Of a stretch of 64,000 bases of DNA, positions 17,569 to 36,100 are shown in pieces. This stretch comes from Phaeosaccion multiseriatum. Lineage: Eukaryota > Protista > Ochrophyta, other classes. How positions within the stretch are numbered: the first letter of the stretch is position 1; every line of letters starts with the position of its first letter. Below the pieces are notes generated by a model. That model did no database searches, was not told where the DNA came from, and saw nothing but the letters and a program-made list of their open reading frames with translations. The DNA is taken from contig OZ218959.1 of assembly GCA_965112735.1 (NCBI GenBank), positions 992,001-1,056,000 on the forward strand, written 5' to 3'. The translations under genes and the position numbers were made by a program.

Positions 17569-18211
17569 GAAAAGTTGTGCATCACACCCCTGGTACTTAG
17601 AAAGAAAACGTTTGCTCCCTTTTTAAGTGCCCTTGATCACACACACCTCCTGTACAGTACTTTGCACACAACTCCTGGCTGGCGGGCAGAGGCGGTCGTG
17701 GAGTGGTCGATCATTGTCAGGCGGTGGCCTATAGTGGCATAATCTGGCAGCAATTTAGCGAAATGGAGAGGTCTATGAAGGACGAGGAAGATCAGGAGGT
17801 GTGGAATAGACATTTATTACGCTTACTACTACTATTTATAGTCTCCATCACATCACTTTGTGTACACACTAAACTAAATACTAACAAGGCTTCTCTTCCT
17901 ACTTTGGGTAAGCAACAAGGGGGTCTAATTTATGTGTTCAGAATGAGGCCCCCTTGGTTTATTTCGGGCACTTCTCAGCCTCCAGCTGCTGCTGCTGTCT
18001 TTGCCAGGTGTAGAGCACCCGCTCCAAGACAGCACTCCACAACTTCGCTCAAGCGCTGCTGCTTGTCTGTCCGCAGCTCAGGGCCGACGATTCGACAGAG
18101 CCACAATCAAGCAAAGTTAGTAAACAGACCTGAGCAGCTGGAGGGACAGCACTCAGTCGTCTTGACACCAACCCTGAGCAGCTAGAGAGACCGCACTCAG
18201 TTGTCTTGACA

Positions 18212-20449
18212 TCACCCCCTCGGGGCCATCATAGCCCCCTCGTCCTTGAAGGCGATGGAGCAGCTCTTGAGCAAGTTCAGCGCCTTTAGCGTGCCCTTCT
18301 CGTAGCATGTCACCTTAATCTCGCTGCCCCCGAAGGTCATCTCCACGTCTACGCCGCGCTCCTTGAATGGCTTTGTCATGTCCATCCCAATCTCAATAAT
18401 GGCCACCTCTCGCGTGTACACATCGGGGTCCTTGACGTACTCCACGTCCTTCTGTCGGCTGGTGAGGAGTATCAAAGTGATGCTCGTGTGCGTGTCCAAG
18501 ATTGGAGAATAGCCTGCACGGGCCTTAAAGCCATGCGGTATTGAATCTCCCCTCGTCACATGTTTGCGAAGTATCCGGAGTCGCTCTTCTCCACATATCA
18601 TTTCCATCTGATGACGCCGTGCCTCGTGCTCCTGCTTGCCCGGCTTGAACTTTGTGGTGCTTCTAACGCAGTAAGTCAGGCGAGCGATACGAGAGGCGAA
18701 AGTCGCTTCACTTGAAGCAAACAGGACTGCTCCCTTGACGATGGCCAGTCCCGGTCGCGGGGCCTCCACGACATGTAGACCGTTGATCGAAGAAGTGTCC
18801 TGGAACCTTTCCCGCACAGCGTTGCGCAGGATGGAGCATTCGCTGAAGCCGCCCACCAGAATGATGTACTTGAGACCATGCAGGCGCTTGTCCAGCAGCA
18901 GCTCGGCCACGAACGCGACGATCTGCGACACCTGCGACGAGAACCACGGCTCCACCACTGCGGGAGGGATCTTCAAGGTCCGCTTCATGCCCCCAAGGCG
19001 CTCCTGCGAGGGCGGGGCGGGGCGGGGGGGGGGGGGGGCTTATGAGCAAAAGAGCTTAGAGAAGCACGTCACCCCGACTGCTTCTATGTTTGGACGCCGT
19101 TCTCTTACCTCGTCCGAGTGACTGTAGTTGTAAAAGTCCTTGAGGAGCTGCAAGTCGTTGGTCTCCAGCTCAAGCCCGTCCGCCAAATCTCCGAGACTGA
19201 GGCTGAGGTTTTCACCCTTGGCGTAGCCGATTTTCTGATCTTCCCACCGCCGCATGAGAGCGAGCTCGTGAGGAGTGCCTTCAACCCTACTCCAGTTGGC
19301 TGCTCCCAAGAAGGACTGTCAAGACGGTGGTAGGGAAGACAGGACAGACCAGAAACGGAGGCGTCAAGGAGACGGGTTGACCAAAGCCGATCTCGACGAG
19401 CCGACGTCATTGCTTGCAAACAGATAGCCCTCCCCTCTTGTCTGCTGCTCTCACATTCTCCCTGTCTTTCGGCTCCGCCCCCATCTCTTTCCCGTTTCTC
19501 TCGGCCGCTCATTCTGATGACACCTCGCTCCTTACACACTCCACGCTTCAGGTACTCTCCACTGCTACTCATTCACTCACTCATGCACCAACCAAGCCTC
19601 GCCCAATCCTTGGCTAACATGTCCACCTACCTGCATGAACTTTTTGAACTCCTCGTCCACTTTCCCCGCTGCCCATGACCCGCCACAGGGGGCGATGAGC
19701 TCCGCTAGCCTCAGAGGCTGCGTCTGTGTCAGGGTATGCGCCGTGATGTCGACCGTTCCCCCCCCGCAGTCGAGGACCATGATCTTGTCCCCCGGACTCC
19801 ACGGTCGCATGGACTCAGGTGTGGCATTGACACACAAACACGCCGCCTCCGGCTCCAGGCATAGCTTCACTTGAACATTGTCGACGCGGTCACTCTTCAG
19901 GCCCGCTTGGAACGCAGCTTCTTGCATAAACGACTTGCCGAAATCGAGCCAGATGGCAGGCACAGTGAGCATCCACTTGATACCATTGGCTTGCACGTGG
20001 AAGCCGCTTCGGCAGAGGCGCTCAAGAATCTTCACTTTGAAATACTTGAGGGCAGCTGAGAACACGTGCATGAGTGGCATCGCCTGGCCATCCTCTGCAT
20101 AAGCGAGTGGCTCCAAAGTACTCTCGTATCCGCCAGGCTTGTGCAGGTGCATCTTAAAATGCCTAAAGAGCATCCATTTTGGATTCGCAAGCTTGCCTTT
20201 CTCCTCATCCAAGTACCGCTCAATGGCCGCTTTCCCGAAGCTCGTCGCCTCCGTAGCGGCCCCGTCTGCCCTCTCGATGAGAACCGCGGTCTCGTCTTTG
20301 TCCCACCCGTCAGCTTCCCCGTCAGGAGTTGACATGCGTATATCATGGTGCTCAGTCCCAACCGTCCCGTACGCGTACGCCGACCTGCTTGTTCCCAGAT
20401 CGATGGCCACCACAAAAGCGCCTGCAGCAGCAGCTGCGAAGGCACTCAT
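18212..20449 (-). CDS. HSPA12-like atypical Hsp70, copy A (3 exons: 20449-19631, 19315-19109, 19003-18212; ~605 aa)
   Basis: Hsp70/actin-fold motifs VVAIDLGTSRSAYAY, WMLTVPAIW, LCLEPEAACL, MVLDCGGGTVDIT, IILVGGFSEC and PGLAIVKGAVLF. Phase-0 GT-AG introns. No canonical lid or EEVD tail, as in HSPA12-type proteins. Confidence 0.88.
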
Positions 20450-20853
20450 GATCACCCTCTCCTCCCTTTAAGTTCTCTCTCTCCTGCTGCTTCCTACTCC
20501 TGCCGCTCCTCCTGCTGACCACAAATAGAAATAGACGTCTGGAAAATCACGAAAGTCCCCCCACACTTATTCCTCACTCCTCCGACGGCGGCGTTGATTT
20601 CTGTTGAGCTGCTCCCGCGATCTAGCCGTCTTCGGGGTATGATGTGTGAGCATTTGTGGGGTTAGTGCTTTATGTATTGTGCGCAGGAGATTGAACGAAC
20701 TGCTCCCACGTAGCACGCACTCGGGATTGCAGCGCACAGCACAGCATGGTTTGTTTTTAGAGAGCAGAAGCGTGGTGAAGGAGTTTGTTGGAGGGCTCAC
20801 GCTGCGCTAGGCACTTTTCTCTCTCTCTGAATCAGGTGCAGGTGCTGAACACC

Positions 20854-22725
20854 ATGTTTGGAAAGCCGAGGGACTCACGCACTCAACCCTTAGACCAGCT
20901 TGCGACCGGAATCCCGAGACCACGCAGTACTAGCCGAAGTAGCGCCACCAGCAGTACATGCACCGGCAGCCCGCCGTCCCCCCCGTCCCCACCGAATTTG
21001 ATCAATGCTCCAACGAGGAGGGCAGCACACGCCTTTCCACGTGGTGTAGAAGACGAAGGGGCCAAGCGAAGAACAAGAAAGCTCGAGATCGGACTTCGTG
21101 AGGCCCAGGACGAGGGGAGGGCCGCCACGGATCGATACAATCGACTAAAGAAGGGGGCAAGGGAGTTGATAAGAAGCATAGAAGAGGAATCGAACGCCAA
21201 GAGAAGAGATAGCGAGCGCGAGCTGGAGGCAGCAAAGAACGACACTGATCGCCTCCGCAGAGAGCGGAATGACTATCGGGAGAAGATCGTTGAGCTTGAA
21301 AGGACGAAGGAAGCCTACAAAGATCAGGCACGAGAGCACCGTATTGAGGGCAAGAAGATGGAGGATGAAAGAGATACGGCCTTGCGCCAGTACGGAGAGG
21401 TCAAGGAGGAGCTCGTCAGCATGAAGATGGGTATGGGGGAATCTGCGGAGAATATGGAGGGACTGGAGGGAGCGATGGGCATCATCAAGAGCTTGGAGCA
21501 GGCAGGCAGTGTGACGGAGCTGGCCAAGGTCTCCCTCGAGCTTGACCAGGTCAGCGCGGAGCTTGCCCAGGTCACCGAGGAGCTTGCGAGTGTCAAAGTT
21601 GAGATGGCAGGGAAGGTGGAAAATCTGGATGAAGCGCTGCGCCTCAAGAGCCAGGAGTACCGCGACGTCTACAGGAACATGACGGAAGTCTATCAGCTAT
21701 ACGAAGAGACCAAGACGGAGCTTTCGTGCGTCAAGACCGACAACGGCCACGTCGCTAATGAGATGGCGGCTCTTCGAAATAGGCGTGATATGAAGGTGAA
21801 GGATCTGGAGGTAAAGCTGCGAGACAAGTGCGAGGAATGCGACCATGGAACCTGCCACGGCGCGAAGGAAACTAGGCAGCTGCTCAAAGAGGCCGAAGCG
21901 GAGCTGGAGAGGATAAAGGCTGAGAACACCAGGATTGTGGGCCAAGCTCTGCTCCGGGATGCCTCCGTCAACGCGGGTGTGGCCAACATTGCCTCCAGCT
22001 TGAAGAGCGGCCAGGAGGTGGGACGCATCATCGGGACGACCTTGCGACCGGCGCTAGAGGATCTAGTTGAGATTATGCTGGAGGCCGAGCACGGTGTGCC
22101 CTGCTATCTCCTCTTCCTCCTTACGTGGATTTGCCGTAAGGCCGTGAAGAAAGAGGAGAGGACACGGCTCCATGGCCTCCGCGGTTTCTTGGGAGAGATT
22201 GAGGACATTAGCGGCAGTTTCGCCACCGTGGGGCACGCCAGTTCTGCCGCGACGAAGGAGTTCGTCTCATACCATGTGCACGCCAACGGCTCCAAGCTCC
22301 TGCCGCCACTGTCAGTTACGGAAGTCGCCTCCCTGCCCATCATGGGAGAGGAAGGGGGGCACGGCCACAATCCCATGGTGCGCATGGCGAACAGCGTGAT
22401 ACAGAGCGCCAGGACAAGCCTGGAGGCCGACAAGAATGTCGACGAGGAGCTCCGAATCGCAGCGCTGGTGTGGATGGACAGGCTGTGGAATACACGAGAG
22501 CTGCAGAAAGTGGTGCAGGTAGCGCTTTTCGTTTTCGCACAATGCGCGCTGCAGCCTCATGGAGGTGCCACCATCTGTGAGGGAGAGCACGACGCAATCG
22601 GATCAAGGGCTCGGTTCGATCGAGCAAAGCATGACGAACCACTAGACGGCGAGAGTGGCGTGGGAAGAGACTGCGTCGTAATGTTTCCTCGAACCAAGTT
22701 CTCCAAAGCGCTCGTGCTGATGTAA
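20854..22725 (+). CDS. Intronless long coiled-coil protein with helical region and GrpE/MIEAP-like C-terminal motif, copy A (~623 aa)
   Basis: First ATG at 20854 in the 646-codon ORF. Ser/Pro-rich N-terminus, ~300 aa of E/K/R heptads, then a C-terminus ending RFDRAKHDEPLDG...CVVMFP...KALVLM. A paralogue lies at 29184-30527. The domain call is an inference. Confidence 0.8.
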   Translation: MFGKPRDSRTQPLDQLATGIPRPRSTSRSSATSSTCTGSPPSPPSPPNLINAPTRRAAHAFPRGVEDEGAKRRTRKLEIGLREAQDEGRAATDRYNRLKKGARELIRSIEEESNAKRRDSERELEAAKNDTDRLRRERNDYREKIVELERTKEAYKDQAREHRIEGKKMEDERDTALRQYGEVKEELVSMKMGMGESAENMEGLEGAMGIIKSLEQAGSVTELAKVSLELDQVSAELAQVTEELASVKVEMAGKVENLDEALRLKSQEYRDVYRNMTEVYQLYEETKTELSCVKTDNGHVANEMAALRNRRDMKVKDLEVKLRDKCEECDHGTCHGAKETRQLLKEAEAELERIKAENTRIVGQALLRDASVNAGVANIASSLKSGQEVGRIIGTTLRPALEDLVEIMLEAEHGVPCYLLFLLTWICRKAVKKEERTRLHGLRGFLGEIEDISGSFATVGHASSAATKEFVSYHVHANGSKLLPPLSVTEVASLPIMGEEGGHGHNPMVRMANSVIQSARTSLEADKNVDEELRIAALVWMDRLWNTRELQKVVQVALFVFAQCALQPHGGATICEGEHDAIGSRARFDRAKHDEPLDGESGVGRDCVVMFPRTKFSKALVLM

Positions 22726-23212
22726 GTATAGCAGACCACAAGGTTGACAAATACATAGGAGTAACGAAATAAGTAATTAAGGTTGTAATGCATAGGAGAC
22801 AGATACACGTCTTTGAGCAGCACAGCACTGTCTTCACTCCCTGTTGTAGCACTCCTTGTCGCGACACTCCTTCTCCTGGGCGTTTGGTCCTCTCCTTCCC
22901 CCGCCGCCCATCCCGTGTCCCCCCCCCCGGAGCACGTGCCCCACTCGAGCTGCAGTGGTGTACGACAGCCAAAAGCACGACGCTTCTTCATGTTCCCCAC
23001 ACTAGGGCGCCTCTGCATCAGCCCCCCCCTTCCCTAGGGACCGAACCGCCGCCTTCCCCCCCCACTCGCTCTCACTGGGCACCGCGATGGCTTCTCCCCG
23101 TACTGCCTCGAGGCCGGTTACGAGTCTTTCTTCTGTCTCTGACACCTTGCGACTCACCACGCCGTTGTGCAGCAGCGGTGCCCACCACTTGGCTGCATGG
23201 GACGCGGAGGGT

Positions 23213-23596
23213 TCAGCAGGCACAGGGAATGAGGTATTGGGGGAAGGAGTGTGTGGATGGCACCTGATGTGAGCCAATCAGCACGGATGCCGGCGCTCAC
23301 CTGGCACCTGCCGGTTGTAATCGTGCAGCAAGTTTGCCCTCTTGTTGAGCAGGCCGGGGTCTCGCTCCAGCCCCACGCTCCGGGCCATGTTCACAAGCAG
23401 CACCTGTGGACGGACACGTGACAACACAAGAGGGGCATAAGGCCACAGGAGGAGGCTCCCAACCCGCACACACTCACACACACACGCACACACACTCACT
23501 CACGAATACACACACACTCACACTCACGAATACACACGCACGTATACACACGTACACACACAAGCACATACAAACACGCACATCCACCAACACACA

Positions 23597-23636
<40 letters not shown>

Positions 23637-24291
23637 CACACACACGCAAACTCACCTCGAGCGAGTGGAAGGTGGAGGCAAATGAAAAGTCGTCGCCCCG
23701 TCGGATGCGCAGCAGCCACTGCGGTCGATAAGGATACAGAGCAAAGGGGGTTGGCGTGAAATCAGAGTACCACACCATACCACATCTCCGCAAGACCACA
23801 TCAGGCTCTGTGTTTGTGTCCTGTTTATGAACCGTGCGCTTCTCCCGACGGAGCTACGAAACCTTTACTTACGGGACTCCAAAACTTTTGGAGGATGTTC
23901 CTGTGGAGAATGAAGCCTCGCTCCGCATCCTCCGGTCTGTCCGCGTCAATCCTGAGCACCGACGCGAAGCTGCCCAGCATGCGCTTGGCCACGAACACGA
24001 GGGAGGTCGCCTTGGAGCGGTTGGGGAAGAATACGTCGAGAGAATCCAGGCGGTAGCTCTCGCACGCCGGCACGTAGGCCTGAGGGGGAGGAGAGGGGCG
24101 TGAGAAAGGACAGGCGTAGGAGTAAGAGAGGGAGAGAGAGAGGACGGAGCGGTGGGCGAAAAAAGCACAGGCGTTTAGGCAAAGAGGGAGAGAGAGAAGA
24201 GAGGGAGAGAGAGAGAAGAGAGGGAGAGAGAGAGAAGAGAGGGAGAGAGAGAGACAGAGAGAGACAGAGAGAGACAGAGACAGAGAGAGAT

Positions 24292-24332
<41 letters not shown>

Positions 24333-27300
24333 CTGTGTTGCACATTCGCTCTGCTCCAGGCCTATCCTTACGCACCCGAGTTAAAAAGTTGGGCGGTGTG
24401 GAGGGGATGATGTCGCCTCTCTGGCAGTAGTGGATGAGGTCCACATCCAGCTCCCTGCGTCGGCGCCAAGTGTGAGCAGCAAAGAGGGCAATAAGTGCGA
24501 GGAGGTGGGGCAGGTGAGGTGCCAGCAGCTCCTTAGCTCAGCGGTTGAGAGGCACCCGCCAGTTTGAAATAGTAGAGGCCTTGGGGCAGCTCACTGTTGG
24601 GGCAAGGGCAAGGCGGCAGGCAAATCTGCGTTCCACGCATTCTTTCTTTCGCATAGACACCACCCCACCCTTTTTCCTTTTTGTGTTGTTGTTTCCACCA
24701 TTCATACCATTCATCGAGCCCATATGCCTCTCCCTCCTTGCCCCTCCCTCAGTGCCCCTCCATGCTCCTCCGTCCATCCCACATGCCCCTCCTCACCTGA
24801 GCTCCTTGGTCAGCGCCATGTTGCCCACTCGGGGCGAACAGAAGAGCTTGCCCCTCGTCTTGACACCCTCTCCTGCTGTGCCCATATGCCTGAGGCGCTG
24901 CGCAACGTCCAGCGCGCAGAGTGTGGCCAGGCCGGCGCCGAGTCCGTGGCCACACACCGTCACAGTGTCAACCTTGCCCTCCCGCACGTACTTGTCTAGC
25001 GCCTGCCTCACGTCCTCCTGCAGAGAGTCTCTCTTCTCCTCCTTTCCCTCCTCCTCCTCCTCCTCGTCCTCCTCCTCCTCCTCCTCCTCCTTGTCCTTCT
25101 CCCCGGCCCCCTTCTTGTTCTTCCCTCGGCCGAGCGCGAAGGAGAGAGCGGCGCTTCCCACCTGGTCAATAGAGAACCATAGGAATCCGAAGGCGGCTTG
25201 CACCTTCGCTAGCACCTTCCCGGTGGGGGGAAGGTCATCGCCTTTGCGCCGCGTGTACATGCCCAGCATGCCCCTGTCCGTGAGTGCGTGCGTGGGGAGG
25301 TGGGTGGGTGGGTGCGTGCGTGCATGCATGCGGTAGGCGGGGGTCCGAGGAGAAAGGCGTGAAATCAAATCACACGGTACACTGGTACCTCACTGCCGCC
25401 GAAGCGAAGGCCAGGACAGAGGCAGGACAGGGTCAGGATCGATCTTGGATCGTGGGGTCGATTCTTTGTCTTCTTCTATGGTCGAATGAACTGAAGTGAA
25501 CTGAAGAAAACACACCCGACAGACCCATAGACACACCTGTGCACGGCGATGTTGGGCACTTGTTGACCCCTGTGCTCCGTGGTGGCGCTGAGGAGCCCCC
25601 CTGCGAGGAGCCAGCGCAGAATAGACATGTTCCATTCCTCGCCGTCCCCGCTCTGCAGATGCCACATCGCCTGCCGAGGTGGGGGGCGAAGGGGTGTGTG
25701 TTATGAAGGGTGTAGGGGAAGAACGGAGTGAGCGAGCGAGGACCGTACACCATAGTATACTGGACACCCTCCGTCCCCACACCTTCTGTCTCGACACCCT
25801 CTGTCCTGACATTCGACACCTTCTGTCCTGACACCCCCTGTCCTGACACCTTCTGTCATGACACCCTCTGTCCTGACACCCTCCGTCCTAACACCCTCCG
25901 TCCTAACACCCTCTGTCCTGACACCCTCTGTCCTGACACCCTCCGTCCTGACACCCTGCGTCCTGACACCCTCTGCCCTGACACCCTCTGTCCTGACACC
26001 CTCTGTCCTGACACCTCTGTCCTGATACCCTCTGTTCTCACACCCTTCGTCCCGACACTCTGTCCTAACACCACCCTCTGTCCTGGTCCCCTTTGCCTTG
26101 ACATCCGTATCCTACACTCTTTGTTCTCACGTCCTTTGTCCTAACACACAACTCCACCCACCATGCCCGCCTTGACACCCTCCTGTCGCTCGGTGGTGGT
26201 GAGGGTGCCTCTGAACACGACGGAGAGGTCCCTGCTCTGCGGGGAGTACGCGATGTAGCCTGGCAGGGCAACGGACCATCATAAGGACGAAGTAAGATTA
26301 GACTGTAAGGTGATTTGAAGTTGTGACCCTCCCGACCCTCCCGCTCTACCCCGCCTGTTACCCGCCCCAAGCCAGGCTGCCCCCCCCCCCCCCCTCAGCC
26401 TCTCGCCCGACCTCTCGGGAGCACCGCAAAGCAGGGCAAATGTCTTCCCAGAGAGCGTGCGTTGTCATCCCTCCCCCACCCAGTGCTTTCCCTCCCTCCC
26501 TCGCAGCCCTCCCCATCCATCGCCCCGCCCTCCCTCACATCCATCCATCCCGTTGCTTGCCTGCGAACGTGCGCTCATCCGCCTCCTTCTGCGGCAAGAG
26601 AGTGGTGACCCTATACTTGGCGGCAGCCGTGTACAGAAAGTCCAACACCTCCATTCCCTCGGGAAGGTCCTTGACGGTTGCCCTGAGGAAGCGCTCCAGC
26701 TGGCGAAGCTCCTCGGGCAGCACTCGACCGCCGTCGTGAAAGTGACCAATGTCCACTATGCTTTGGCCGTAGTATCTGAGATGGGCAAGACATTCGTTAG
26801 ACGCCCAGCAGTCCTGAGACGCAGGGTGTCGGGGACAATACTCCTGACAGAGGGGGTAAACCGAGCGGAGAGGGCCTCGGCAGGCGGGCGACACACGTTT
26901 CAGCACCACCCTCTGCCGTACGCATGCCTGCACACAAAAGCGTTCTGCTCCTCCCACTACTGCTGCGGCCGGGGTCGCACCCAAGAGGAGAGGAAAGCGG
27001 ACAGACACTAGTAGTGGGACAGACCCGTGGTGGGAGGAGGCCCTGGCCGGCCGACTGACTGACTGCCCCAGGCACTGGCCGGTCGACCGACTGGATGACA
27101 CCAGGCACTCCCTGACACCAAGTACTCCCGACCTACTCACTTGTTGGAGGAGTCCATGACGAAGAGGTCGTAGGCGGCCTGCACCATGGATCCGTACACA
27201 ATGTCACTCCTTACGGCCTCGTGCATCATCTGAGGCCGTAACACCGTATCGCAAGGAGGGTAGAGAGGTAGAGAGTTTCGTTGTGCCTCTGTCAGAGCAG

Positions 27301-28860
27301 ATGTGTGCACACAAGCCTTTAAAGGGCGTGCGAAATAAAGAAAGCAGCGTGGGCAGACTTGGGGGACGCAGAAGGCATAGAGGGAGAGATGGGAAGGGAG
27401 GGATAGAGAGGTAGACGGGGAGGGAGGGAGAGAGATGAAGGGACGGACGAAGGGGGGCAGAGAGGGAGAAAGAGAGGGGGCGACGGAGGGAGGGAAGCAG
27501 CGGAGGAGAGGGAGGGGGGAGGGAAGGACACGGAGTCCTGATGACACTCCGAGGCCCACTCACGCGAGGACCACTCACCGCGTCCTTGTCCGACCCCGGC
27601 GCAGCGTTGCGCGTGAGCCTCTCTCTCAGAGCCGCACACACCTTGGTCTGACTGGGCAGCGGCGATCGAATCGCCCAGTACAGTCTATACACAAGCGAGA
27701 GACCAATGAATAGAAGGGTTGAGGTCAGTCGAGTGGGAGAGTGCCAGAGTGTCTGAGTGGCAGAGCGGGGAGGGGACGGACTCACTGCGAGTATTTTAAG
27801 AGCAGCGCTGCGGCAAGTAGTCTCACTGCCCTGCCCACATGGTGCGAGGAGGACCAGAGGGCATACTCGTGGCCCAGATGGACAAGAAAGTGTATGCCTC
27901 CTCCGAAGACCAGCTTGAGCTTGGAAGTGGCGCCGAGGGCAGACACCATCCGACCAACTACCCTGAGGACACACACAGCGCCGCACAGAGTGAAAGAGGG
28001 ACTGTCAGTGCTTCGGGAAGTCCAGGTGTGCAAGAAAAGGAAGGGCCGAGCATCTCCTTGCCGTGCTAAGGGGGGGCACTCTCTGTGGGCGGCGGATGGG
28101 GCTTGCCGCCTTCCGAGAAACTCTCTCAATCTCGCTCTCCCTCTCTTTCTTTTTTCTTTCTTTCTCTCTCTCTCTGCCTCTCTCTACCCTCTCTCTCTGT
28201 CCCTCCCTCTGTCTCTCTCCCTCCATCTGTCTCTCTGTCTGTCTGTCTATCTGCCTGTCCGTCTCTCTCTCCCTTTCTCCCTCCCTCTCCCTCTCTCTCT
28301 TGCCGAGCCAAGTAAGGACTTGGGTCCACGGCTGGCCTCCACGGACAAGCCACTCATCCCCGAACACGTCCGATCGCTGCAAGTATGAAAGATAAGCACC
28401 TACCCAAGTACACTTACCCAAGGACGGTGCTCATAAACTCGGAAAGGTTGACTTTTTCCCGGATGGCCTCCGGCACCAGGCCCAGTAGGTTGTGTACGTA
28501 CTCTGCCACGGTGGACTTGGCTGCCTCCGAGGCTTCTCCCACTCCAGCCGCACTCAGTCGTGGGCTTGCGCTTTCCCATATCCCTGCCGCCGACGAGCGT
28601 GCCTTTCCTCTCTCTGTGGACAAAGAAGAAAAATCAAAGCCCACAGAGGCACAAGTCCTCTTGCGCCCCTTTCTCCTGATGATGAAGCCTCCTGGGATCG
28701 CACCAAGCGCTGCTACTCCTGGCGCTCGTTCGGTGGAGCCATGCCCCCGTGCTACGTGCCTCAACAGGGTATGTGCAACAGGAGAGAACGCTTCGCAATG
28801 CCACCCAGCTGTGCACAGCAGCATAATGGTTACTCGAGCAAGCAGTCCCTGCATCTGCAT
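23213..28860 (-). CDS. Multi-exon class-3 lipase / DAD1-like phospholipase A1 homologue with bipartite plastid-type presequence; nucleophile Ser replaced (GHGLG)
   Basis: N-terminus MQMQGLLARVTIMLLCTAGWHCEA-FSP. Exons encode YGSMVQAAYDLF, GYIAYS...DLSVVFRGT, VTVCGHGLGAGLATLCALD, FCSPRVGN, GDIIPSTP and ERDPGLLNKRANLL, in the order seen in Lipase_3 PLA1 enzymes. Confidence 0.75.
25780..26100. repeat. Intronic minisatellite, ~15-bp unit (CTGACACCCTCTGTC)
   Basis: About 20 degenerate tandem copies visible. Confidence 0.9.
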
Positions 28861-29096: not shown

Positions 29097-29193
29097 GGCA
29101 AGTTGTTCAGCAACCGCTTCTATTTCGCAACCGAAGCAAAGGGCAAGAACACGAAGTGAAGGCAAGTTGTTCAGCAACCGCTTCTATTTCGCA
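29097..29193 (+). repeat. Perfect 33-bp direct repeat (GGCAAGTTGTTCAGCAACCGCTTCTATTTCGCA) x2 at the inner edge of the right duplication arm
   Basis: Copies at 29097-29129 and 29161-29193, separated by 31 bp. Confidence 0.9.
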
Positions 29194-30527
29194 CCCTCGT
29201 GCCTGCTATACTCTAAGAGAAGCACAAGAGCTTTGGAGAAGTTGGTTCGAGGGAACAGAATCATGCAGTCTCTACCCACGCCTCTCTCGCCGTCTAGTGA
29301 TTCGTCATGCTTGGATGGCTCAAATCGAGTCCTTGATCCGATTGCGTCGTGCTCTCCCTCACAGATGGTGGCACCTCCATGAGGCTGCAGCGCGCATTGT
29401 GCGAAAACGAAAAGCGCTACCTGCACCACTTTCTGCAGCTCTCGTGTATTCCACAGCCTGTCCATCCACACCAGCGCGGCGATTCGGGGCTCCTCGTTGA
29501 CGCTCTTGTCGGTCTCCAGGCTTGTCCTGACACTATGTGTGATGCTCTTCGCCATGTGGATTATGCGATGGTGCTCGCCCCCTTCCCCTTCCTCTCCCAT
29601 GATGGGCAGGGAGGCGACTTCCTTAACTGACAGTGGCGGCAGGAGCTTCGAGCCGTTGGCGTGCACATGGTATGAGACGAACTCCTTTGTCGCGGCAGAA
29701 CTATTGAGCCCCACGGTGGCGAAGCGGCTGCCGATCTCCTCAATCCCTCCCAAGAAACCGCGGAGGCCGTGGAGTCGTGCCTTCTCCTCTTCCGTGACGG
29801 CCTCACGGCAAGTCGACAGAAGGAGAACAATAAGATAGCAGGGCACACCGTGCCCGGCCTCCAGCATCATCTCAACTAGATCCTCCAGCGCCGGTCGCAA
29901 GGTCGTCACGATGATGCGTCCCACCTCCTGGCCGCTCTTCAGGCTGGAGGCAATGTTAGCCACGCCTACATTGACGGAGGCGTCCAGGAGCAGAGCTTGG
30001 CCCACAATCCTTGTGTTCTCAGCCTTGACCCTGGCCAGCTCCGCTTCGGCCTCTTTGAGAAGCTGCATGTTTTCCTTCATACAGCGAAAGAATTTGTCAG
30101 ATTTCTTCCTCTCGCTGTCCAGCTCTACATGAAGCTCCTCTACCTGAATCTCATGCCTATTTCGCAGCGCCGCCATCTCATTCGCGATGCCATCGTTCTC
30201 GGTCATGACAAGGGCAAGCTTCATCCTCATCTCTCTGCTCTGTTGCCTCACTTGCTCCATCTCTTCATAGATTCCAATGTATTTCTCGTTCTGACTGCTC
30301 ACCGCTCCCTCCAGATCCTCCACCTTGAGCGACATCTCAGCTTTGACCCTATCCAGCTCGTCTATGGCCTGCGCAAGCTTCGCCTCGGTGTCTTCGCTCA
30401 GCGCGGGGCTTCTTCCTTCAAGCTCTGGCTACGCAGCGCTTCCTCCAGCTCCTTCATGGCCTCTTCGTGCTGCCGTACGGCCTTCCTTCTCCTTCTCCTC
30501 CTCCTGGTGTGCACTACTCCTAGCCAT
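29184..30527 (-). CDS. Coiled-coil/GrpE-like protein copy B, 5'-shortened; intact ORF 30335-29184, upstream part interrupted (possible pseudogene or short isoform)
   Basis: The 383-aa ORF is highly similar to the C-terminal ~60% of copy A. ATG 30527 is in frame with it but has a TAG at 30431-30429. Copy-A-like sequence (AVRQHEEAMKEL vs ALRQYGEVKEEL) is in a different frame. Confidence 0.7.
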
Positions 30528-33080
30528 GTTGCTCTCGTGTCAAGGAACCGACAGCGAGAGGGGGGTGGTCCACAGAACTCCTGTCACAACGTAATAACGT
30601 TACAGAAACTCGCCATTTTGGGGAAAAGAAGGGGGGTACAGTGGAGTACAAACAAGGACTAGAAGAGACAGAGCGAGCTTCAGGAAGGGTAGAGTAGGAA
30701 GCGATCATGAGTGCCTTGGCACCTGCAGATGCGGGCACCCTTGTGGTAGCCATCGATCTGGGGACAAGCAGGTCGGCATACGCGTACGGGACGGTGGGGA
30801 GTGAGCATCATGATATACGCATGTCGACTCCCGACGGGAACGCTGACGGGTGGGACAAGGACGAGACCGCGGTTCTCATCGAGAGGGAGGACGGGGCCGC
30901 TACGGAGGCGACGAGCTTCGGGAAAGCGGCCATTGAGCGGTACTTGGATGAGGAGAACGGCAAGGCTGTACACCCCAAATGGATGCTCTTCAGGCACTTT
31001 AAGATGCACCTGCACAAGCCTGGCGGATATAGTAGCACATTTGATCCTGTCGCCTATGCAGAGGACGGCCAGGCGATGCCACTCATGCACGTATTCTCGG
31101 CCGCCCTCAAGTACTTCAAGGTCAAGATCCTCGATCGCCTCAACAGGAGCGGCTTCCACGTCCAAGTCATGGACATAAAGTGGATGCTCACTGTGCCTGC
31201 CATCTGGCTCGATTTCGGCAAGTCGTTTATGCAAGAAGCTGCGTTCCAAGCGGGCCTGAAGAGTGACCGCGTCGACAATGTTCAAGTGAAGCTATGCCTG
31301 GAGCCGGAGGCGGCGTGTTTGTCTGTCAATGCCACACCTGAGTCCATGCGACCGTGGAGTCCGGGGGACAAGATCATGGTCCTCGACTGCGGGGGAGGAA
31401 CGGTCGACATCACGGCGCATACCCTGACACAGACGCAGCCTCTGAGGCTAGTGGAGCTCGTCGCCCCCTGCGGGGGAGATTGGGCAGCTGGGAAAGTGGA
31501 CGAAGGGTTTAAAAAGTTCATGGAGGTACGTGGACATGTTAGCGAAGGATTGAGCGAGGCTTGGTGGGTGCGTGAGTGAGTGATTGAACAGCAGTGAAGA
31601 GTACCTAATGGCGAGTTGTGCAGTGTGTAAGGAGCGAGGTGTCATCAGAATGAGCGGACGAGAGCGACGGGAAAGAGATAGGGGCGGAGCCGGAAGACAG
31701 GGAGAATGAGAGCAGCAGACAAGAGGGGAGGGCTATCTGTTGGCAAGCAATGATATCGGCTCGTCGAGATCGGCTTTGGTCAACCCGTCTCCTTGACGCC
31801 TCCGTTTCTGGTCTGTCCTGTCCTCCCTACCACCATCTTGACAGTCCTTCTTGGGAGCAGCCAACTGGAGCAAGCTGAAGGGCACTCCTCGCGAGCTCAC
31901 TCTCATGCAGCGATGGGAAGATCAGAAAATCGGCTACGCCAAGGGAGCGCACCTCAGCCTCAGTCTCGGAGATTTGGCGGACGGGCTTGAGCTGGAGCCC
32001 AAGGACTTAAAGCTCCTCAAGGACGTTTACAACAGCAGTCACCCTCCTGAGGTAAGACAAACGCTCTGCGTTCCAAATTCGCCTCGAGAAGCAAATCTAC
32101 GTGGCGTGCTGCCCTGCGCTCTTCTGCTCACCCCCCCCCCCCCCCGCCCTCGCAGGAGCACCTTGGGGGCATGAGTCGAAACTTGAAGATCCCTCCCGCA
32201 GTGGTGGAGCCGTGGTTCTCGTCGCAGGTGTCGCAGATCGTCGCGTTCGTGGCCGAGCTGCTGCTGGACAAGCGCCTGCATGGTCTCAAGTACATCATTC
32301 TGGTGGGCGGCTTCAGCGAATGCTCCATCCTGCGCAACGCTGTACGGGAAAGGTTCCAGGACACTTCTTCGATCAACGGTCTACATGTCGTGGAGGCCCC
32401 GCGACCGGGACTGGCCATCGTCAAGGGAGCAGTCCTGTTTGCTTCAAGTGAAGCAACTTTCGCCTCTCGCATAGCGCGCCTGACATACGGCGTAAGAACC
32501 ACCACAAAGTTCAAAGCGGACAAGGAGGAGCACAAGGCACGGCGGAAGCAGATGGAGAAGATAAACGGGAAGGCGCGCATCGCGGTACTTTCCAAGCACG
32601 TGACGAGGGGGGATGACATTCCGCAAGGATTCCGGACCAGGCGCAGTTATTCACCCATCTCGGAGTCGCACACTGGCTTCGCTTTGCGACTCCTTACCAG
32701 CCGACAGAAAGACGTGGAGTACTTGAGGGACACCCATGTTTACACTCGGGAGGTGGCTAGCATTGATATTGACTTGGATATGAAGAAGTCCTTCCGGGAC
32801 CGCGGCGTGGACGTGGAGATAACCTTCGGGGGCAGCGAAATTGAGATAGCGGTCTTTGAAAAGGGCACGAAGAATGAGATCAAGAGCTGCTCCATCGACT
32901 TCAAGGATGAGGACGACGAGGGTGCCGTGGAGGCCGTGTGAGGGGGTCATCTCAAGACTGAGTGCTGCTACCTCTGCACGCAAAGGACCTCAAGCGGCTC
33001 TGCTTACTGTCCTGTCGAACCGGCCGTGAGCTGCGAGCAGATAAGCAGCAGCGCCCGGACGAAGTTCTGGAGTCTTGGAG
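29200..33080. repeat. Right arm of inverted segmental duplication
   Basis: Mirror image of 18020-22740 with the same gene order and intron positions. Confidence 0.9.
30707..32941 (+). CDS. HSPA12-like atypical Hsp70, copy B (3 exons: 30707-31525, 31845-32051, 32156-32941; ~603 aa)
   Basis: Same motifs as copy A and identical exon 1 and exon 2 lengths (819 and 207 nt). Canonical GT-AG sites. Confidence 0.88.
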
Positions 33081-33196
33081 ATCCCTACCAGGACAGGAGA
33101 GGCCGTACGCAGAGGTCGTGCAGTAAGCCTTTAATAATAGTCGGCGCCTGTTCCTCCTCCTCCTCCTCCTCCTCCTCTTCCTCCTCCTCCGTTGTC

Positions 33197-36100
33197 CTAC
33201 ACTTCCTCGCACTCATCTTCATCGACCGTCTCCTCTAGCTCCTCCTCCGTCTCCTCGTCCTGCTCGTCCTCGTCCTCGTCCTCGTCCTCCTCGTCCTCCT
33301 CCTCCTGAATGGACATCTCCATTTCGCCGTCGTGATGTTCCATCTCCTCCAGTTCTTCCTCCTCGTCCTCCTCCTCGTCCTCCTCCTCCTCTTCCCTAAC
33401 GGACATCTCCATTTCGCCATCGTCATGCACCGTCTCCTCCAGTTCTTCCTCTTCCTCATCCTCCTCCTCGCCATCGTCCTCCTCCTCCTCCTCCTCCTGT
33501 CGTATTGATATCTCCATTCCGCCATCGTCCTCTACCGTCTCCTCCATTCCTTCCTCCCACTCTTCCCCCTCCTCAGCGGTCTCTACCACTACTCCCTCCT
33601 CCTCGGCGCGACTGCCCTCGCCTACGTCCTCCCTCTCCTCTTCCTCCTCTTCCTCCTCTTCACTCCACCCCTTCATTGAGTTGAGTGTCATGTGCAGCGT
33701 GAGGGCCCCTCCTGAGCGTGCCTCCATGCGCCGCAGCTCCTCTGCCCCTGCTAAAGTGAGGCGGTTCCCGGACATGACGAGCTGCAACTGCACCACTCCA
33801 GACACACTGCCACCGCTGGTACCGCCGCTGTCACCGCCGCTGTTACCGCTGCTGTTACCGCTGCTGCTACCTCTATTGCCCCATGGCCCCCAGCTACTCA
33901 GAGCTCGGACTGCCTCTCCCAGAGCCAGGGCCAACGCCGTGGCACCCTCGTCCCCGATGCAGTTCCTCGACAGGTCCAAGTGGCGAAGCGTGCGCAGCAG
34001 ACATGGCACGGCTCTGACGGCTTGTGCCAGTCGAATGCAGCCCGCGTCTCCTATCCTCTTGCCCATGAGGTTGAGGCTCTCCAGCCACGTCACCTGCGAG
34101 CCCTTGTGCGCTGCTCCTCCCCTGAGTCTGTGCCCGCTTCTGCATCCTCCCCCTCCTCCTCCTCCTCCTCCTCCTCCTCCTCCTCCTCCTCCTCCTCCTC
34201 CTCCTCCTCCTCCTCCTCCTCCTCCTCCTCCTCCTCCTCCTCCTCCTCCTCCTCCTCCTCCTCTTCCTCCTCTTCCTCCTCCTCCTCCTCCTCCTCCTCC
34301 TCCTCCTCCTCTTCCTCCTCCCCCGCCCCGCACACCGTCCCTGCTTTTCCTTTCCAGCACCCTGGCGAGGAGGTCAAGCTGCTTGCAGGTGACGGGTCCA
34401 TCGTACTTTAGCTCGTACAGGGCGGATATGCGCCGCACATTGCTGGGCTTTTCGTTCAGCCGCCGAATGACGTCATACATGGCACTTCCCTCTGCCTCTG
34501 GCCCTGCCTCTGGCCCTGCCTCTGGCCCTGCCTCTTTCTCTGCCTTTGCCCATATGCCTGCCCCTGCTGTGAGAGCCTCCGGAGCAGTGCACTTGCTGCC
34601 GCCGCGTCGGGCCCCTCCTGCGGACCCCCCCCCTCCTTGTCCCTGTGCGTGGTGCCGACGTCGCCGACGAACGGGGGAGGGCGCCACGCCCAACAGGTTG
34701 GCGGGGAAGGAGTCGGCCGATGCTTTGCTCTGCTGCTGTTGCTGCTGTTGCTGCTGCTGCCCTTCCCCTCCCTTCGCCCCTGAGGGCCCGCTCTTCTCGT
34801 CCTGAGCACTGTGTCCACTTACCGATGTCCAAGCGCCTCGTTGCTTGGGGGGGCGGCGTCTCCCCATGGCCGTGCCTAGGCCGAGAAGGGTGGGGGCGGC
34901 GGCGGCGGTGGCCTTGAGCATGAGGGGCGTGGCAGAGCGCTTCCTCCCTCGCGCCACCTTGCCCGTCCCTGCCCCAGCCCCGCTGCCGACACGCGAGTCG
35001 AGGCCTTGGCTGCTGACGCTGTGCCACACTGCCACACTGTGCTGCTCAAGTTGTAGTGTACGCCAGTTGTGTCGCATAGACCCTACTCGGGAGGGAGGCT
35101 CCAGCCCTCCATGGGCCTCCTTCCCCTGCTCCTGTGGTTTGCCGTCATCTTCTTCCTTCTCCCTCCTCTCCTCCTTCTCCTCGTCCTCTTCCCTCTCCAC
35201 TGCGGCAACTCTGGGTCGCCTCATTCGGAAGCGCAAGAATGGAGTGCCTTCTTGCCTCTTCCTCTTGCTCGCCGCCGCTGCTCTCCGCTTCCCGCCATCG
35301 CCATCGCCGCTGCGCTCTCTAATCTTCCGCGCCCACCACTTCTCGGGCAGCGGAGCAGCGCGTGAGAGCATTTGCTGAGCGGTGAGGCTCTGCAACCCAC
35401 CCCTCCCGCCTTTCGTCCCCCCCCCCGTCACAACCCCCCCCCGTACCCCCTCCGAACTATCGCCCATCTTGGAGAGGAGAGGGGACACTCGCGGGGGCAG
35501 CTCCGTCCCTGCCCCTCCCCGCAAAGGAGTGCCTGCTGCCTGTTGCCCGCCCGCCCCCTCGCCCTCGAACGTCTCAGTGGTTTCCGTCTGCGTCATGTCC
35601 TCCTCCTCGGTTCGATTCTCCTCTCCTCCATCCGTCCCTGGGCCCGCTTCGCCCCCTGTCGCTCCTCCTCCTCTTTCTGCTGCTCCTGTACCCCCGCTCC
35701 TCTCCTCGGTGCTCTGTTGCGCAGTTTCTGCTCGCTGCTGCGCCTCGTCCTGCCTGTCTAGCTGCTGCTGCTGCAGTACCGCGAGTCGCTGCTGCTGCAC
35801 AAGTTGCTCTGCCGCGTGTAGCACACCTTGCTGCACGTGCTGTTGGTACGCCAAGCTCGCGTGTTGGATAGCCTGTCCGTCCGTCCGCGAAGCGAGGTAG
35901 ACGGTCAGAAAGGTTAGCGCCTGCACAAGAAACAGACCCCCTGGCCCCGGAGAGGGGTTCCACCCCCACCAACCCCCACTTCCCCGGCGGTTCAGCTCGC
36001 TCAATCACTACTTTGTCCGTACCTTGGCAGCGGCGGTGGAGGTGAGCCTGTGCTTCCTCAGCACCTTGCACACGAACTGGATCCGGTCGTAGTCGAGCGG

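Follow-up and report, generated by a model that had tools for sequence, protein, structure and literature searches.

The stretch of DNA analysed here (the window) covers 64,000 nucleotides of the alga Phaeosaccion multiseriatum (assembly GCA_965112735.1, contig OZ218959.1, positions 992,001 to 1,056,000 of the forward strand). This eukaryotic DNA is GC-rich (56–67%) and is part of an assembly of 67 Mb in 22 contigs. It contains two Hsp70-like genes that we call gene A and gene B, and comparison of these revealed a mosaic of near-identical and strongly diverged blocks. Gene A lies on the minus strand (20449–18212) and encodes a protein of 605 amino acids, and gene B lies on the plus strand (30707–32941) and encodes one of 603. 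The genes point away from one another, their start codons are approximately 10 kb apart, and they have the same structure of three exons, with every intron running from GT to AG (Table 1). The joined spliced models were used for translation, for the codon alignment of A and B, for calculating nonsynonymous (dN) and synonymous (dS) divergence and their ratio (ω), and for one tblastn search within the same genome.

Divergence between genes A and B

A preliminary description of this DNA reported that the two genes share a near-identical ATPase region and intron followed by a sharply divergent substrate-binding region. Much of this was borne out. The stretch from LKIPPAVVEPW to SRIARLTY (codons 353–453) is present, as are all of the other peptides quoted there, and the two proteins are identical over it at 101 of 101 positions, with 98% identity in the DNA. 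After RLTY the proteins diverge heavily while staying in frame and alignable. From codon 454 to the stop, a region that we refer to as the tail, 94 of 147 residues (64%) and 75% of the nucleotides are identical and there are two small indels; the boundaries given for this region (18212–18675 and 32488–32941) are correct to within a codon or two. The reported similarity of intron 1 was also found, at 290 of 313 positions (92.7%) with 8 additional gap positions. To call the ATPase region near-identical was an overstatement, since codons 1–453 are 90% identical in protein, codons 248–352 only 78%, and codons 81–160 have a dS of 0.88. The onset of divergence was placed correctly for the amino acids, which break after RLTY at 18670, but the near-identical DNA already ends approximately 20 nucleotides earlier, at about 18690. 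The RIARLTY motif, which is nearly invariant in the family, is encoded in A and B with several synonymous differences. Purifying selection preserves this motif, and conversion does not.

Sliding identity and a map of differences placed two near-identical tracts of 274 and 288 nucleotides, with only two differences in each, beside blocks where 20–35% of positions differ. Most of intron 1 differs by approximately 4–7% (about 4% over the 3′ 245 nucleotides of the gene A intron), codons 1–80 and 248–352 are intermediate, and codons 81–160, intron 2 and the tail are strongly diverged. In intron 2, 68 of 91 positions (75%) are identical and there are 27 gap positions. Most of these indels come from a poly-C run shortly before the 3′ splice site that differs in length between the genes (19040–19065 in A, 32133–32147 in B).

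The same pattern was seen at silent sites. With the Nei–Gojobori method, dS was approximately 0 at codons 161–240 and 0 to 0.03 at codons 361–440, versus 0.74–0.95 in windows of codons 81–160 and 0.72–0.88 at codons 461–580; taken as one block, the tail has a dS of 0.64. Divergence at fourfold degenerate sites (K4) was 0.02 for codons 161–247, 0.09 for codons 353–453, 0.18–0.24 for codons 1–80 and 248–352, 0.54 for codons 81–160 and 0.63 from codon 454 to the end. Uniform divergence along the gene, which the preliminary description named as the outcome that would speak against its view, was not seen: fourfold sites in fixed 50-codon blocks were heterogeneous (χ2 = 50.4, df = 12, p = 1.2 × 10–6), and a χ2 this high did not occur in any of 20,000 permutations. 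Unbroken runs of identical fourfold sites extend to 34 sites for the longest and 29 for the next (permutation P = 0.022 and 0.0009, respectively). At silent sites codons 81–160 of the ATPase region are as old as the tail, and the mosaic does not track domain borders.

The homogenised zone includes non-coding DNA. Intron 1 is 92.7% identical, whereas intron 2 is only 75% identical and has indels, and the 5′ flanks cannot be aligned. The difference between the introns rules out selection at the level of codons as the cause. Rfam gave no match anywhere in the window, intron 1 included, and folding of intron 1 gave no signal (z-scores of +0.23 and +2.25). On these grounds we rejected RNA structure, or membership in a known RNA family, as the reason for the conservation of intron 1. 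Because intron 2 is poorly conserved and intron 1 lacks both an Rfam match and a fold signal, a functional intron element is not needed. Intron 1 is very probably better conserved than the tail because it lies inside a fairly recent conversion patch and the tail lies outside one.

Protein family and predicted fold

Searches of Pfam and the PDB and word searches were run one exon at a time. Exon 1 alone gave a sub-threshold match to Pfam HSP70 (E = 0.076, 11.7 bits versus a cut-off of 20.6; the whole spliced protein was not scored) and exon 3 alone gave no match to Pfam HSP70. Exon by exon, Pfam yielded only sub-threshold matches, to HSP70 and BcrAD, and sequence searches of the PDB yielded nothing useful. 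The family was assigned through word search, pairwise comparison and fold. The exon 3 word search covered proteins of 145–460 amino acids, so that full-length relatives fall outside its range. It returned 24 proteins with 23–31% identity (E = 8.5 × 10–18 to 6.7 × 10–8), covering 80–92% of the query in 23 of them and 69% in one, and for nearly all of them the match takes in the last part of the nucleotide-binding domain and the entire tail. One is annotated as ‘heat shock 70 kDa protein 12A-like [Ruditapes philippinarum]’, from a clam (P0022; pairwise E = 7 × 10–18), and is the sole relative with a specific family name; several relatives carry Pfam HSP70. Exon 1 is 37% identical to one such carrier (P0007; pairwise E = 5 × 10–21), and the closest clusters in the ESM Atlas are molluscan. 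Both copies contain DLGT(S), EPEAA, GGGT and VGGFS. These fit DxGT(T/S), EPxAA, GGxT and VGG-S, which are hallmark motifs 1, 2, 3 and 5 of the Hsp70 groups (PMC12692333).

The family alignment shows the tail to be conserved as a domain of the family. Exon 3 was modelled with AlphaFold2 from this alignment, and the model had a mean predicted local distance difference test score (pLDDT) of 80.8, with values of 84–93 over most of the tail. Foldseek with this model returned full-length DnaK, Hsc70 and BiP (E = 10–5 to 10–4). Residues 103–260 of the 263 in the model superpose on isolated substrate-binding domains of human HSP70, DnaK, Kar2 and HscA (Z = 11–13 over all four, 12–13 for HSP70, DnaK and Kar2) and correspond to DnaK 391–514; one such superposition has a root-mean-square deviation of 2.3 Å over 114 residues, with DnaK 391–508. 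The preliminary description took the divergent region to be the substrate-binding β-sandwich, and the match of the model to the β-part of the Hsp70 substrate-binding domain (SBD-β) agrees with this. Both proteins end 3–7 residues past the last strand; because the sequence stops right after the sandwich, there is no helical lid (SBD-α) and no EEVD. From the model, the tail is predicted to be an Hsp70-type substrate-binding β-sandwich without a lid. Sequence and modelled fold together indicate that genes A and B encode HSPA12-like (Hsp70-12) atypical Hsp70s rather than canonical Hsp70.

Two residues in this region stand out. Copy A has a Cys (18668–18670) where copy B (32489–32491) and 18 of 18 sampled relatives have a Gly, which changes TYG to TYC in the linker motif. 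Unlike the sampled HSPA12-like relatives, both copies lack a Cys that is otherwise invariant and have Leu or Ile in its place.

Selection on the tail

The preliminary description also suggested diversifying selection on the client-binding domain, as in immune receptor families, and set down high dS with dN/dS well below 1 in this region as evidence against positive selection. This is what we found. The tail has a dN of 0.23 and an ω of 0.36 (bootstrap 95% confidence interval (CI) 0.22–0.59), ω reached 1 in none of 5,000 bootstrap replicates, and the highest value among 40-codon windows of the tail was 0.53. As a comparison, ω is 0.11 (CI 0.04–0.27) in the equally old ATPase block at codons 81–160 and approximately 0.1 in the ATPase core. 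Mapping the variable residues on the model, as had been recommended, showed no concentration in loops, with replacements at 41% of the residues in strands and 35% of those in loops. By BLOSUM62, 21 of the 53 replacements in the tail are conservative. With 18 family members as an outgroup, the residue of copy A was the closer one at 28 positions and that of copy B at 20 (p = 0.31). This count gave no support for neofunctionalisation, in which one copy would evolve asymmetrically, and the idea was rejected.

These data show that the tail is under weaker purifying selection and lies in an old, unconverted block. Diversifying selection across the whole domain is refuted, and two sequences cannot speak to selection on specific sites. 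The sole part of the gene with a dN/dS of 0.9–1.0 is at codons 321–380, around the junction of exons 2 and 3 (19100–19000 and 32040–32180), and this ratio rests on few changes where dS is low.

Inverted repeat, neighbouring genes and copy number

Comparison of the two halves of the window by blastn placed genes A and B in an inverted repeat with two blocks. The first (A 18193–20453 versus B 32965–30703, 86.2% identity) is the Hsp70-like gene and is extended by a patch in the 3′ untranslated region to 18034 in A and 33073 in B. The second is 81.8% identical over 1204 nucleotides and comprises the 3′ two thirds of a coiled-coil gene that is transcribed divergently from each Hsp70-like gene. The arms span approximately 18034–22753 and 33073–29185, and approximately 6.4 kb separates their inner ends. 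The coiled-coil pair has a dS mosaic of its own, with values of 0.8–0.9 at the 5′ end of the alignment and 0.04–0.07 near codons 554–613. Because the neighbours share such a mosaic, patchy homogenisation is a property of the repeat and not of the ATPase ‘engine’.

Table 1. Features of the two Hsp70-like genes and the inverted repeat (window positions).
Feature	Position	Strand	Basis
Gene A exon 1 (codons 1–273), nucleotide-binding domain lobes I to IIB, Hsp70/ASKHA-type	19631..20449	-	ATG at 20449 to GT donor at 19630, open frame
Gene A intron 1	19316..19630	-	GT..AG; 92.7% identity to gene B intron 1
Gene A exon 2 (codons 274–342)	19109..19315	-	Frame preserved over both splice junctions; 87.4% identity to B exon 2
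Gene A intron 2, poly-C tract	19004..19108	-	75% identity to B intron 2
Gene A exon 3 (codons 343–605 and stop), end of nucleotide-binding domain, then SBD-β-like domain	18212..19003	-	Open frame; AlphaFold2 mean pLDDT 80.8
Gene A C-terminal SBD-β-like β-sandwich (residues ~445–602), divergent region	18224..18697	-	Fold match; dS 0.64, dN 0.23, ω 0.36
Gene B exon 1	30707..31525	+	90.5% identity to A exon 1
Gene B intron 1	31526..31844	+	Alignment to A intron 1
Gene B exon 2	31845..32051	+	Reading frame
Gene B intron 2	32052..32155	+	Alignment to A intron 2
Gene B exon 3 including stop; divergent SBD-β-like part from ~32489	32156..32941	+	Reading frame; A/B alignment
Putative conversion tract 1, gene A (within exon 1)	19705..19978	-	2 differences in 274 nucleotides
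Putative conversion tract 1, gene B	31178..31451	+	Counterpart of A 19978–19705, gap-free exon 1 alignment
Putative conversion tract 2, gene A (5′ part of exon 3)	18690..18977	-	2 differences in 288 nucleotides
Putative conversion tract 2, gene B	32182..32469	+	Counterpart of A 18977–18690
Arm A second block, 3′ two thirds of coiled-coil gene	21556..22753	+	blastn 81.8% versus 30383–29185; open reading frame 20785–22725
Arm B second block, paralogous coiled-coil gene	29185..30383	-	blastn and alignment to arm A block

Neither coiled-coil neighbour gave a significant Pfam match. Some 40-codon windows of this pair have an ω of approximately 1.4–1.6, at low dS, and the long open reading frame next to gene B is much shorter at its 5′ end than the one next to gene A. 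The shared bidirectional promoter and the 5′ part of the coiled-coil gene cannot be aligned between the arms (20454–21555, 1.1 kb, versus 30384–30702, 0.3 kb), and the two modules may be regulated differently as a consequence of their unalignable promoter regions.

In the 67-Mb assembly only two full copies of the Hsp70-like gene were found, genes A and B. A 64-codon open frame on contig 2 (C2:1401424–1401624; L003:1492–1686 (-); also L007:5413–5622) matches only the last part of the β-sandwich, with 56–57% identity to both A and B and a stop codon at the same place; upstream exons were not found within 10 kb around it. Judging from its sequence, this frame is probably what remains of a third copy. 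A third paralogue as the donor in conversion was rejected, as apart from A and B the assembly holds only this 3′ relic, and with two full copies no third donor is needed.

Several low-complexity stretches lie around the arms. Downstream of gene B (33150–34330) there are long, coding-like repeats of trinucleotide type that are Glu/Asp-rich on one strand, and a short stretch in the spacer between the arms (25033–25115) resembles them. The central spacer is flanked on both sides by microsatellite-like tracts of CA- and CT-type dinucleotides (23400–24340 and 28000–28400), which match each other weakly and in inverted orientation by blastn (A 24124–24329 versus B 28121–28301).

Probable gene conversion and alternative explanations

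In all likelihood the mosaic reflects patchy interlocus gene conversion between the arms of an old inverted duplicate, with a tail that is both less constrained and unconverted. Conversion as the mechanism and the order of events are what we infer from the observed mosaic. A module of two genes, the HSPA12-like atypical Hsp70 and the divergently transcribed coiled-coil gene, would have been duplicated in inverted orientation long ago. The arms would still pair, and non-allelic, intrachromosomal conversion would pass patches of a few hundred bases between them, each patch setting divergence to zero at all sites that it covers, whether exon or intron, synonymous or nonsynonymous. Successive events of unlike age would then yield a mosaic: two recent tracts with less than 1% difference, an older patch over most of intron 1 with approximately 4–7%, the intermediate blocks, and blocks that may have been untouched since roughly the duplication (ATPase codons 81–160, intron 2 and the C-terminal domain), with silent divergence of 0.55–0.9. 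The tail may at first have remained unconverted by chance, and later its 25% base divergence would have removed the homology that conversion requires; this level of divergence probably now hinders further conversion there. The tail looks so sharply divergent because it combines an unconverted block with weaker purifying selection. In this respect the preliminary description, which proposed that conversion homogenises the ATPase engine while the client-binding region escapes, was right about conversion, given the two tracts of near-zero dS and intron 1, and about the tail having escaped it recently (K4 of 0.63). Its division into engine and client domain did not hold, as seen from the K4 of 0.54 at codons 81–160 and the mosaic in the neighbouring gene.

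Some points weigh against conversion. There are only two sequences, so the proof that paralogues are closer than orthologues in the converted tracts cannot be made, and no second strain and no close orthologue was found either in a metagenome scan with the exon 3 alignment of A and B or in the word search (at most 31% identity among proteins of 145–460 amino acids). The tracts have no excess of GC at third codon positions (GC3; 0.71–0.73 versus 0.64–0.75 elsewhere). A signature of GC-biased conversion was therefore rejected; GC enrichment is common in conversion but not obligatory. The single longest identical run reaches a P of only 0.022. Finally, tract 2 ends within approximately 10 codons of the domain linker, which could be due to chance or to selection.

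This last point bears on the idea that conversion acts on the whole gene but selection purges alleles with converted tails, so that the two copies keep different client specificities. This would refine patchy conversion rather than replace it. It fits with tract 2 stopping short of the domain border, with a linker motif held by purifying selection despite several synonymous differences, with the tail having the highest dN (0.23) and an ω of 0.36 as opposed to 0.11 in the equally old ATPase block, and with the replacement in copy A of the family-invariant Gly and two commonly conserved residues. A similar process was proposed for yeast SSB1/SSB2 (Takuno and Innan 2009, as cited in PMC3879978). 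However, codons 81–160 and intron 2 have escaped conversion to the same degree with no selection of this kind, strands and loops have similar shares of the replacements, the copies show no asymmetry (p = 0.31), and a DNA divergence of 25% is by itself enough to block conversion. We consider this idea unlikely. Diversifying (positive) selection on the β-sandwich, resembling that on the recognition domain of an immune receptor, is far less probable. At the protein level no other coding part diverges as far as the tail (64% identity), and in bivalves, where HSPA12 is expanded, some tandem pairs are reported to be positively selected (PMC11268181). Against this, the ω of the tail and of all its windows is well below 1, its dS is as high as that of other unconverted blocks, so that age explains the divergence, its variable residues are not enriched in loops, and the family is not expanded in this genome, with two copies and one relic.

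Two further explanations do without conversion. When just two sequences are compared, a low dS by itself is compatible with both recent homogenisation and slow evolution, and the tracts could in principle reflect mutation coldspots or local constraint on silent sites through RNA structure, splicing enhancers or an antisense element. However, the zone of low divergence crosses 315 nucleotides of intron, intron 1 has neither a structured-RNA signal (z = +0.2 and +2.3) nor an Rfam family, divergence steps abruptly from less than 1% to more than 20% inside one exon, and an unrelated neighbouring gene has the same kind of mosaic, all of which makes such constraint or coldspots very improbable. An artefact in which reads of one paralogue were copied into the other during assembly or polishing is extremely unlikely. 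Mis-mapping of paralogous reads during polishing can homogenise similar segments, but the tracts sit in well-differentiated flanks within an assembly of 22 contigs, two single-base differences remain in each tract, and polishing would not give rise to the graded intermediate levels of divergence (4–7% and 18–24%).

A more elaborate version of selection on the tail is that the modules are specialised pairs, in which conversion keeps a shared ATPase engine and selection guards a β-sandwich that recognises an equally divergent N-terminal coiled-coil region in its own neighbour. We think that this is distinctly improbable. If true, conversion would even out the engine and the C-terminal domain of the partner as the recognition surfaces diverge together, and the alga would have a small chaperone–adaptor system shaped by conversion.

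Comparison with other Hsp70 paralogues

The Drosophila hsp70 pair at 87A7 is inverted. Like the Drosophila hsp70 genes, A and B are close and oppositely oriented duplicates of the Hsp70 family with apparent intrachromosomal conversion and diverging flanks. The Drosophila genes are canonical, intronless and heat-inducible, and conversion extends through almost all of their coding region, whereas A and B are HSPA12-like and have introns, patchy conversion and a second gene in the arms. Concerted evolution of Drosophila hsp70 by gene conversion has been reported (Bettencourt and Feder 2002, as cited in PMC3879978).

Conversion together with purifying selection has been described for the Hsp70 paralogues HSPA1A/HSPA1B in mammals and SSB1/SSB2 in yeast (PMC5865164; PMC3879978), and in the latter pair a few paralogue-specific residues persist despite conversion (PMC3879978, and Takuno and Innan 2009 cited there). 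Genes A and B resemble these pairs in having purifying selection alongside conversion. By contrast, HSPA1A/HSPA1B and SSB1/SSB2 are nearly identical along the whole coding sequence, whereas in A and B the tail and one ATPase block have a silent divergence of 0.5–0.9, and GC-biased conversion is reported for HSPA1A/HSPA1B, whereas the tracts in A and B have no GC3 excess.

With HSPA12A/HSPA12B, including the massive expansions of HSPA12 in bivalves (PMC11268181), A and B share an atypical nucleotide-binding domain with DxGT, EPxAA and GGxT (PMC11268181; PMC12692333), a family-specific C-terminal domain with RIARLTYG and FG-TEI motifs, and the lack of a lid and EEVD. As with oyster HSPA12 paralogues, for which gene conversion has been suggested, A and B appear to undergo conversion. 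Unlike the animal genes, they occur in a GC-rich alga, are only 23–31% identical to the animal proteins, and number two copies and a relic rather than dozens.

Conversion between Hsp70 paralogues is known from Drosophila, mammals, yeast and nematodes in addition to being suggested for oyster HSPA12 (PMC3879978; PMC5865164; PMC11268181). The locus described here is one more example of this long-known conversion in Hsp70 pairs, a textbook pattern with no diversification of the immune-receptor kind, and it leaves the current understanding of Hsp70 evolution unchallenged. For this genome it indicates that inverted duplicates lying close together swap DNA a few hundred bases at a time, which is a caveat for annotation and provides a clean worked example. 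Unless silent sites are checked, identity between paralogues or conservation of an intron is no evidence of functional constraint, and divergence is no evidence of positive selection. The locus also documents, outside animals, a protein of HSPA12 type with a predicted Hsp70-like β-sandwich that has been duplicated together with a coiled-coil neighbour, and this may aid the study of this module.

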